This document shows, in pieces, positions 7,711 to 10,700 of a stretch of DNA of 33,000 nt. The notes under the pieces were generated by a model, which was given only the letters and a program-made list of their open reading frames with translations, made no database searches and was not told the origin of the DNA. The DNA is taken from the NCBI GenBank assembly GCA_011109175.1, contig RDEW01000003.1, positions 403,001 to 436,000 of the forward strand, in the 5' to 3' direction. The position numbers and the translations under genes are program-made. Source of the stretch: Dicyema japonicum (taxonomy: Eukaryota; Animalia; Dicyemida). Each line of letters opens with the position of its first letter. The stretch's first letter is position 1.

Positions 7711-10700
7711 TTACTGTTTTTCAAACAAAAAAATACTACGATAAGAATCAACTAATCTATCCATCTCAGTTAAGGGGACCCAGGCGTGATAGAACTGATT
7801 CATCTCCCCTTTGTGATCACATACTTCTAATCCATTGAATAATTCACCCCTCACTCCTTCAAAAAAGTCCCCATTCCCCTATAATAGTGAATATATGTAT
7901 ACCAGAGCACATCCAAAAACAACAAGTGATTTACCATAAACGTCAACGTCAGACACGAACAACGTCGGAGCCATCAGTTCTGTCCGTTTAAAGGGGGTTT
8001 TAACATCACGGAATGACCCAAATCCCGACCTCACCAAGATTGGGGGAACCAGTACATTATCAAACGAAAATTCATCAATTATTTTGGCATAATCCTACCA
8101 ATAATAACCAGGATTACATTAAGCACATGGTTAAGCCTTATTTCCTCCAATTTGGAATTCATTTGAAATCGAAGTTGACCAGAGTCCACTGAGAGTCGAT
8201 TACGGTAGGACCAAGGGATCACACTCGATGCTAATTTCTAATTATAATGAGGAACAAGTCACTTTATTGATAACTTTAATCTTCTCAAGCCAGTTTTTGG
8301 AACCATACGACCACCTTACAGTCTTCCAAATCAGAGAGTACTCTCCTTTCAAATCATTCCCTACCCTGATGGCCTAACGTATGACGACTGAAAAACTTTA
8401 ACTGCAGAGTCTCCGCACAAAACAGTCACCCTCTTCTTACCTTGAGAAACTCCACTAAAGCCTATTACAGAGATAGCCCCAATATCTCCACTATTGAGCA
8501 CGTGACTGAAATAATAAAGGAAAAAGACTCACGTGCCACAGCATAACTCGGCATGTTGAGTTGGAAAGTACTTCAAGGCGTCAAAAGAGCCACCTCCCGC
8601 CTCAACCCCATCCATTTCGACCACTCGAACAACCGCGGGATAGTCACCAATGTTAGGCAAGGTTTTCAGATAAGACAAGCTTAAAGCGTCCTGTAGGTTC
8701 ATCTCATTGACAGATATCCCCAAGTTGCTTTTCACAATCTGGTTGCAAATGACCTCGATCAACTCCACTGATCGAGAAAAACGGAGAGACTAGCATTTAC
8801 GAGACAAAAAACCGCGCTTAACTTCAAATCAGAACTTTCCGCGTAAAATGGCATCAACGATTCCTTTAGGAAACCATCAACGTGCAAGTAGGCACAATTC
8901 TCCCTTGAACAAGTCCTCAACATGTGATCCCTACATAGAGTGGCTGATTGTGTAAAAAATTCATCTTGAGGGATTACTGTAATGCAACACTCCAAAATAG
9001 AGTCCACCCCCTGTTCAATCAAGAGTTGGTACCTTCAGGGTTCGATCTGGCAAGTAAAGCATATTATTGTCTCCCCCAGCCGTCATAGAGTTTAACTAAA
9101 GATAACAAGAATGGCTACAAATCCGAGAAATCAAAGGTGAAATGATCCGAGGTCACATTAGACCCTCTCTGCTCCAACATCCGCACAAACTTCCCCAAAA
9201 CAAAGTTCACTATGTGCGATGCTGAGTGACTCCGCATGCAGCCCATTCTCCTCTCCTTGTCCAACTCTAGTTCTATTTCATCCCCAACAGATAACACTCC
9301 TTCCTCAACTTTGACCACGTGGACTATGTACTCCCCACAGATCTCCACATCAATCACTACCGCTCTCCCATTCTACTCATTGCTAAACAATAAACTAACT
9401 TTTGATATTATATAACCCCGATCCGCCACCTGTCCACCACTACAAGCGTAAAAATTGGTTCGATCAAGCAAGACAATAGCCTCGTCCCCCGCCTCGACCG
9501 ACGTGATAAGGTCTTGACCTCTCTTTAGGCCAACAATAGTCCCAGTGAACTGTTCAAACTCTAAAATAGGCGTAACAACAAACCATATTCCCCCAGTTCA
9601 TTCCTTGAGTATGAATATGGAAGGTAGTCCGTCTTTTCAACCGTATTTTGGAGATCATTCAAATCAACGGGGGATAGAAACAGCTTTTTACTAAAAACAT
9701 AATCCTCCTGAACCCCCTAAAGATAACCCACATGACTACGTCCTCTGTCTTTTCGATTTTATAGTTGCATTCAACATTCAGCAGATCGCAAGCATCAAAT
9801 ATGAATTCCAGCGGGAATTTATACCCGAAACTTCCCCCAGTTAAAAAATTAATGTCATTTTCTAAAAAAGATCGAATCCTCCACCTGAAAGCGCTCTCGA
9901 CTTGGAGATTCCCATGAGTCTCTCTATAGAGTACATGGCTGCTGATTTGATGGATAAATAACGGGTTTCCTCCTCGTTCACTACATCCACAATCTCTTTA
10001 GTGAAAAGACTACCTTCTGTTGAATTTCCTTGGAGATAGGAAACGTGTCCCCCAAACAAGAGACTACTTTTTTGCTCAATGAGCCCACCAGTCCTCGAGT
10101 ACGTTCAGTCTGTTGTATGAATGAGAAAAACATCGAGTGAGGATCTTTCGTAGCTTCATTCTGAACGTGGGTTAACAGACAAACTCATTCCCACGTTTTC
10201 CAGGCATTAGTCCATCCGCGATCAGGTAAGTGAACATCCTGGCGTGGTCGGCAACTACTCGTAAGCTTTGTCAATCCCCCGGGGGTCATCAATTGGACCC
10301 ACATTGCCTCCATACTTGGGACACTTGCTAGACTGCCGATAAAAATAGGGGACAAACCACGTGGATTTCATCCATTATTGGTTTAAACAAATCTGTGTCA
10401 TAATTCGACCTCTTCCCGTTTAGCACGGCAAGGAGTCTTTCCAGACCGATTCCGTTATCAACCCCGGGACAGGCGAGGGGAATGACCTTTCCATCAGGGA
10501 GTCTCTTAAGGGATACTCCCAAACCTGTTGTACTGTATAAAGACCCAATTCCCGATTTCCACGACGTCCGAATTGTCAGAATTGACCAACTGGGGGACAA
10601 AACGACCACCCACGTGGTCATAGTGGACTTCCGTGCACGGTCCACAAGGTCCAGTATAACCGGCGTCCCAGAAGTTGTCTTTGCTACTTCCAGGAATGAT

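Follow-up and report, generated by a model that had tools for sequence, protein, structure and literature searches.

A muscleblind-type CCCH finger cassette between the editing motifs of a mitochondrial-type alanyl-tRNA synthetase gene of Dicyema japonicum

Stepwise acquisition of domains is a classic feature of animal aminoacyl-tRNA synthetases, and the extensions of nematode mitochondrial EF-Tu and mammalian mitochondrial SerRS represent protein-side compensation for reduced mitochondrial tRNAs. The CCCH zinc fingers of muscleblind-like (MBNL) proteins work as pairs and bind single-stranded RNA. To our knowledge, no domain insertion of the CCCH kind is known within the proofreading domain of alanyl-tRNA synthetase (AlaRS). 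A full-text literature search found no CCCH finger among the described additions to aminoacyl-tRNA synthetases, in agreement with the original prediction, made from the sequence of this locus, that a CCCH-containing AlaRS had not been described.

The dicyemid D. japonicum has ultra-short introns with reduced splice signals of the form GTa...AG (PMC13644364), and its mean intron size is 38 bp (PMC6736024). The single dicyemid mitochondrial tRNA that has been described lacks a standard T arm (bioRxiv 10.1101/282285). We analysed a 33-kb stretch of the D. japonicum genome (referred to here as the window). Its tiny introns and GC content of about 38%, together with Nextera junction adapters in the reads, a host-sized set of contigs in one run and an assembly merged from PacBio and Illumina data, are in line with what is published on this species (PMC6736024, PMC13644364). 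An AlaRS gene in the window carries a 329-nt segment, 9118..8790 on the minus strand, in its editing domain, where it separates the FDFS strand from the VELIEV helix.

The segment encodes a zinc finger that resembles ZnF2 and ZnF4 of MBNL1 and MBNL2. It shares their C-x7-C-x4-C-x3-H spacing, its core is that of MBNL1 ZnF2 (CSRENC.YLH) save for a change of K to A, and the likeness runs on into LK..L. However, the cassette has one finger and lies inside an enzyme, whereas MBNL is a splicing regulator. The host gene shares with the metazoan mitochondrial AlaRS (AARS2 type) the class II core, the HxxxH and CxxxH motifs, a putative short basic N-terminal extension and the position in the tree, but differs in carrying an 87-codon insert after the FDFS strand and in having no detectable similarity to the references past ~8367, where C-Ala would be expected.

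Two further comparisons concern the way in which such an insert might arise and act. As an RNA-contacting addition to a mitochondrial translation factor, in a setting where mitochondrial tRNAs lose arms, the finger would be analogous to the additions of nematode mitochondrial EF-Tu and mammalian mitochondrial SerRS. Those are terminal extensions or small in-place insertions, whereas the cassette is a foreign, recognizable zinc-finger module with putative RNA binding. The arrangement is also like that expected of phase 0-0 exon shuffling, with the host donor and acceptor kept and with two exons that are divisible by 3 and have an internal intron of their own. Unlike the usual case, the recipient is a genome of ~23-nt introns, so that the module would have needed to supply or generate two full introns of tiny size.

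The host gene

The AlaRS gene is composed of multiple exons that run from ~11341 down to ~7700 (Table 1). The Pfam family tRNA-synt_2c matched the catalytic exons with E=1e-22 and 7e-24 (80.8 and 84.8 bits for exons 10880-10509 and 11107-10919, against a gathering score of 30.3), which identifies a class IIc synthetase. Full-length AlaRS references aligned by tblastn to 11292-8367, across frames joined by tiny GT-AG introns. Both zinc motifs of the editing domain are intact, HSASH as the HxxxH motif and CCGTH as the CxxxH motif, the latter spanning an intron. Apart from the frame defects described below, the gene has more than 540 conserved AlaRS codons without stops, and its catalytic and editing motifs are intact. 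The nine introns that could be placed with confidence are 22-27 nt in length with 17-46% GC; the GC content of the AlaRS exons is 42-49%.

Table 1. Features of the AlaRS gene and of the cassette within it. Coordinates are those of the window.
Feature	Coordinates	Strand	Remarks
Mitochondrial-type AlaRS gene	7700..11341	minus	Pfam, tblastn, tree
Putative AlaRS start	ATG 11341 + 25-nt intron (11341-11299)	minus	start inferred
AlaRS editing-domain exon, ends ...HSASH(9228-9214)...HFTFDFSGF	9119..9372	minus	reading after read-supported correction
Assembly indel	9122..9124	minus	window GG, read contigs GGG on gene strand; three runs
Intron A, 23 nt, GTAGCC...TTTAG	9096..9118	minus	donor common to 329-nt skipping intron
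Cassette exon 1, 63 nt, phase 0-0	9033..9095	minus	open frame
Intron B, 22 nt, GTACCA...AACAG	9011..9032	minus	
Cassette exon 2, 198 nt, phase 0-0, GVDSILECC...SSDLKLSA	8813..9010	minus	holds finger
CCCH finger, C-x7-C-x4-C-x3-H	8882..8935	minus	in cassette exon 2
Intron C, 23 nt, GTTTTT...GCTAG	8790..8812	minus	acceptor common to skipping intron
AlaRS editing-domain exon, ends ...ELCCGT	8533..8789	minus	H of CxxxH motif comes after 27-nt intron 8532-8506

The closest proteins were mollusc AlaRS sequences (Bulinus, Candidula, Pecten, Pinctada), followed by the amphioxus 'mitochondrial-like' and fish 'mitochondrial' enzymes, and an exhaustive representative-protein search with the upstream editing exon returned nothing above 47% identity. 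In a maximum-likelihood (ML) tree, the window protein fell within a lophotrochozoan clade with 100/98 support. This clade was nested in a 100/98 clade with the chordate (fish, amphioxus) mitochondrial enzymes, and the mite cytosolic-type AlaRS, the single labelled cytosolic sequence in the tree, lay outside the mitochondrial clade. By its position in this tree, the gene is a metazoan mitochondrial (AARS2-type) AlaRS, the identity that had been predicted for it.

Ahead of the conserved AlaRS start is a putative N-terminal extension of 18 residues, basic and acid-free, which is consistent with a mitochondrial presequence. The stretch upstream of the AlaRS start (11345-11600) has a GC content of just 19%. 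At the other end, no AlaRS reference aligned past ...VTVLCGDSA (window 8366-7700; tblastn, E up to 0.01), so the C-terminal linker and C-Ala domain would be either very divergent or reduced.

The cassette and its finger

On the minus strand, HFTFDFS stops at 9124 and the downstream AlaRS block begins at 8768. The sequence as assembled appears frameshifted at 9123-9124, and the original prediction had conjectured a missing G near 9118. We compared window 7700-11400 with short-read contigs (Logan) of three runs, all on a single sample, the contigs representing unspliced DNA. An extra C behind + strand 9122 was present in all three runs at full depth (29.3/29.3, 300/300 and 32.3/32.3). The apparent frameshift is an assembly error in which one G of a GGG run is missing, a homopolymer deletion such as long-read assembly leaves behind, and the conjecture was borne out.

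With the added base, the exon terminates as FDFSGF, in phase 0 before the GT of 9118, and mRNA models with and without the cassette both come into frame. The claim that every model tried, with the finger kept intact or the whole cassette skipped, was 1 nt off holds for the defect itself, which is present in the window, but needs qualifying in that longer introns give some in-frame models on the uncorrected sequence. A micro-exon at 9046-9033 (14 nt; FDFSD-LSNPE-VELIEV, between introns of 72 and 265 nt) was also considered, and was rejected: it is in frame on the uncorrected window only and leads to a stop after the added base.

The predicted coordinates of the segment between the HxxxH and CxxxH motifs were correct, on the minus strand, and its parse into two phase-0 exons bounded by 22-23 nt GT-AG introns was reproduced; together, the two exons contain 87 codons. 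Removal of intron B is required, because reading through it meets a stop codon. The cassette introns have 35-41% GC and match the other introns of the AlaRS gene in length and composition, while the cassette exons (42-44% GC) have the GC content of coding exons. As had been noted, an alternative 23-nt intron at 8790-8768 also joins the cassette to the downstream AlaRS in frame, at the cost of the ancestral SLRFSRS loop.

Read contigs bridged AlaRS exon, cassette and AlaRS exon unbroken (8593-9332, 8635-9241 and 8648-9241). Since the contigs pass through the cassette without a branch, that genome holds no near-identical second copy. BLAST found no second copies of the cassette, of 9187-9332 or of 11440-11540 in the window. 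The cassette is a genuine feature of the genome, present in single copy. When 8600-9300 was scanned with Rfam for snoRNAs or other RNAs hosted by an intron, a chance-level match (E=0.92) was the sole result.

The C-x7-C-x4-C-x3-H pattern occurs once across all frames of the window. When the 87-aa ORF was searched against the PDB with phmmer, the six best matches were all MBNL1 or MBNL2 (5u6h at E=2.4e-4, then 3d2n, 2rpp, 5u6l, 3d2q and 2e5s), in support of the predicted likeness to MBNL1 ZnF2. Five MBNL1/2 entries had E=2.4e-4 to 3e-3, and the next family, CPSF4, followed at E=0.54. The alignment spans ZnF2 or ZnF4 and a few residues past it (MBNL side aCfDslkgrCSRENCkYLHppphLKtqL), and the finger keeps all four of its zinc ligands as well as the CSRENC.YLH core. 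A match to Pfam zf-CCCH, which had been named as a check, was obtained in part: zf-CCCH_10 gave E=3.6e-5, but its 23.6 bits lie under the cut-off of 27, so that the gathering score was not reached. ESM Atlas look-alikes with an assigned family all belonged to zf-CCCH clusters (scores 0.83-0.88) and are leads only, and a single-sequence AF2 model of the 66-aa cassette exon (pLDDT 48.8) was too poor for a fold reading.

The muscleblind family is marked by tandem finger pairs (ZnF1/2, ZnF3/4), whereas one CCCH motif is present in the cassette and in the window, and no ligands are left where the partner finger should be (ILECCITV...). The sequence comparisons class the finger as MBNL ZnF2/ZnF4 type, but for lack of the partner finger the product would not be an MBNL protein.

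Inclusion and skipping of the cassette exons

In known AlaRS enzymes about 10 residues had been expected at the insertion site, and the loop of the relatives is indeed 9 residues long. The spacing between the HxxxH and CxxxH motifs is 101-123 in 69 of the 71 relatives, with two outliers at 153 and 165. Without the cassette, the D. japonicum spacing would be 119, the modal value; with it, the spacing would be 206, which exceeds all. No AlaRS reference aligned within 9100-8811, and no relative has an insert at the site. By this comparison, the cassette is a lineage-specific insertion that interrupts a 9-residue loop midway; it occupies an ancestral phase-0 intron and reuses the donor and acceptor of that intron.

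Two main splicing patterns are in frame on the corrected sequence. Removal of introns of 23, 22 and 23 nt gives one open frame that adds 87 residues and continues into VELIEV. Removal of a single 329-nt intron (9118 to 8790) gives a protein that aligns without gaps with ten relatives, the canonical length that had been foreseen for this pattern. A 108-nt intron (9118-9011), which leaves exon 2 as the sole cassette exon, likewise keeps the frame.

We propose that the 5' region of a muscleblind-like gene gave rise to a two-exon module that landed in a phase-0 intron of the mitochondrial-type AlaRS gene. The module would have retained one intact ZnF2/ZnF4-type CCCH finger, each of its exons being of phase 0-0, and the host donor (9118) and acceptor (8790) would now serve two new 23-nt introns of the standard size for this genome. 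A spliceosome that defines introns of ~23 nt would excise the three tiny introns and keep the 87 codons. In the protein, the finger and its linkers would occupy the 9-residue surface loop that leads from the FDFS strand to the next helix, between HxxxH and CxxxH, and the finger may raise the affinity for RNA, a plausible target being a mitochondrial tRNA-Ala of reduced structure.

Judged by intron-size logic and frame symmetry, the cassette exons are probably present in the mature mRNA of most or many transcripts, a reading to which we assign a probability of roughly 0.55. Inclusion is favoured because donor 9118 meets a good acceptor 23 nt away, which competes with one 329 nt off, and because the symmetry, the open frame and the retained ligands would be unexplained if the cassette were never translated. 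Counting against inclusion are the skipped mRNA, which is in frame and of exactly canonical length, the absence of an insert from the relatives, the Pfam score under its cut-off, the second frame defect described below, and the single finger.

The open frame was compared with dinucleotide shuffles. In 19 of 5000 shuffles (0.4%), no more than three introns of 20-30 nt were needed for a stop-free in-frame path; with introns of 18-35 nt and the same limit of three, the count was 66 of 5000. Under a loose criterion (up to six introns of 18-35 nt) 13% of shuffles passed; for this reason the loose test is uninformative, and the strict parse alone carries information.

These figures bear on the opposite reading, in which the whole 329 nt is one long intron that is always removed, and the muscleblind-like ORF is the non-functional relic of a gene fragment with a coincidental fit to the frame. 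Such an intron would account for the gap-free alignment and the modal spacing of 119, and for the lack of an insert in the relatives; the presumed first finger of the MBNL pair is degenerate, as would suit a relic. Longer introns do exist in this genome, where the mean intron size of 38 bp is above the modal size (PMC6736024). However, constant removal gives no reason for 87 stop-free codons, exons that are multiples of 3, phase-0 joins of modal size and kept ligands. The chance of the two flank joins is 0.03-0.12 by rough estimate, that of the strict parse is given by the 0.4% of shuffles, and the long intron has to be spliced in the face of the competing acceptor at 23 nt. We consider a permanently skipped cassette unlikely.

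Less likely again is a regulated cassette, in which both isoforms are made, for example by life stage or tissue, so that the enzyme comes in finger-bearing and finger-free versions. Each version keeps the frame, the exons are all symmetric (0-0) and exon 2 could also be used alone, all of which would suit alternative splicing. From general knowledge of intron definition, skipping is nevertheless expected to be rare where very short length defines introns.

If the preferred reading holds and the exons are included, the locus would represent an undescribed acquisition of a domain by exon shuffling. It is possible, although we regard it as doubtful, that the finger is constitutive in the dicyemid mitochondrial AlaRS, as an exon-shuffled splicing-factor module that provides extra affinity or positioning for a reduced mitochondrial tRNA-Ala or another mitochondrial RNA. 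An added RNA-binding element could compensate for a reduced tRNA-Ala, given that MBNL fingers bind single-stranded RNA and that the sole dicyemid mitochondrial tRNA described so far is without a normal T arm. A constitutive finger would make this the first CCCH-bearing aminoacyl-tRNA synthetase, and a case in which compensation for tRNA reduction came from a foreign domain. Expression of the cassette would offer a clean and datable case of exon shuffling in a genome of ~23-nt introns, a candidate case of degenerate mitochondrial tRNAs being compensated on the protein side, and a natural experiment on how much the loop between the two zinc motifs of the AlaRS editing domain can accommodate.

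The cassette could also be thought of as a same-strand nested or internally initiated gene that starts from ATG 9086 (MTAGG...). Its product would be a ~105-aa single-finger protein ending at TGA 8761-8759, or the finger joined to AlaRS from its C-terminal half. Three codons before the ATG, an in-frame stop (TAG 9098-9096) gives the look of a gene start, and the succession of exon 1, a 22-nt intron and exon 2 resembles the 5' end of a gene. Against this, there is no space for a promoter or a 3' end outside the coding exons of AlaRS, such a gene would split the editing domain mid-way, and a search of proteins of 48-152 aa found no homologue of the 87-aa ORF. A nested gene is thus very improbable.

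Other frame defects and departures of the read contigs

A second 1-nt frame defect is located at ~10262 on the minus strand, where GCTTAC is followed by GAGTAGTT. PRGIDKAY and the next block are in different frames there and have one C in common; with CC in its place the universal AYRVVADH motif would be restored, and the frame cannot be mended by any intron. This defect is probably a second homopolymer deletion of the assembly; in view of it, a decaying locus is a slight possibility. The assembly carries gene-breaking single-base homopolymer deletions, and a short-read check is advisable before frame defects are interpreted.

The contigs of all three runs depart from the window at two points, 9187 (loose end GGGAGATACGCGTTGACCAATATTACTGAA) and 9332. 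At 9332 the loose end is similar to window 11472-11503, the differences being A7 to A6, C4 to C3 and one substitution. These departures suggest a second locus with a 146-nt near-identical tract of the AlaRS exon, which is the simplest reading, or a structural variant without 9333-11471. Because the AlaRS alignment is continuous across 9332/9333 and the runs contain 90-94% of the words sampled across the entire stretch, we provisionally read no misassembly of the gene at 9332.

The two frame defects (9122 and ~10262) and the contigs, which diverge at 9187 and 9332 and of which none was placed on 9333-11400, are what might be expected of a decaying AlaRS pseudogene or an assembly chimera, in which the cassette would be without a protein context. 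However, the 9122 defect is absent from the reads, and the conserved codons are otherwise stop-free with the motifs intact. The continuity of the alignment and the presence of the sampled words argue against a chimera as well, and the dip in depth does not amount to a finding. We regard a pseudogene or chimera as highly improbable.

Some smaller differences between window and contigs were observed. At 9299-9300, every X1 and X4 contig has TT where the window has CC (+ strand), which changes EGV to EKV in the AlaRS exon and represents either a window error or a variant of the second locus. Single-base differences at 7938 (A>C) and 7948 (G>T), both in X2, and at 8586 (A>C) in X1 and X4 fall in the poorly conserved 3' part of the gene and in the editing-domain exon.
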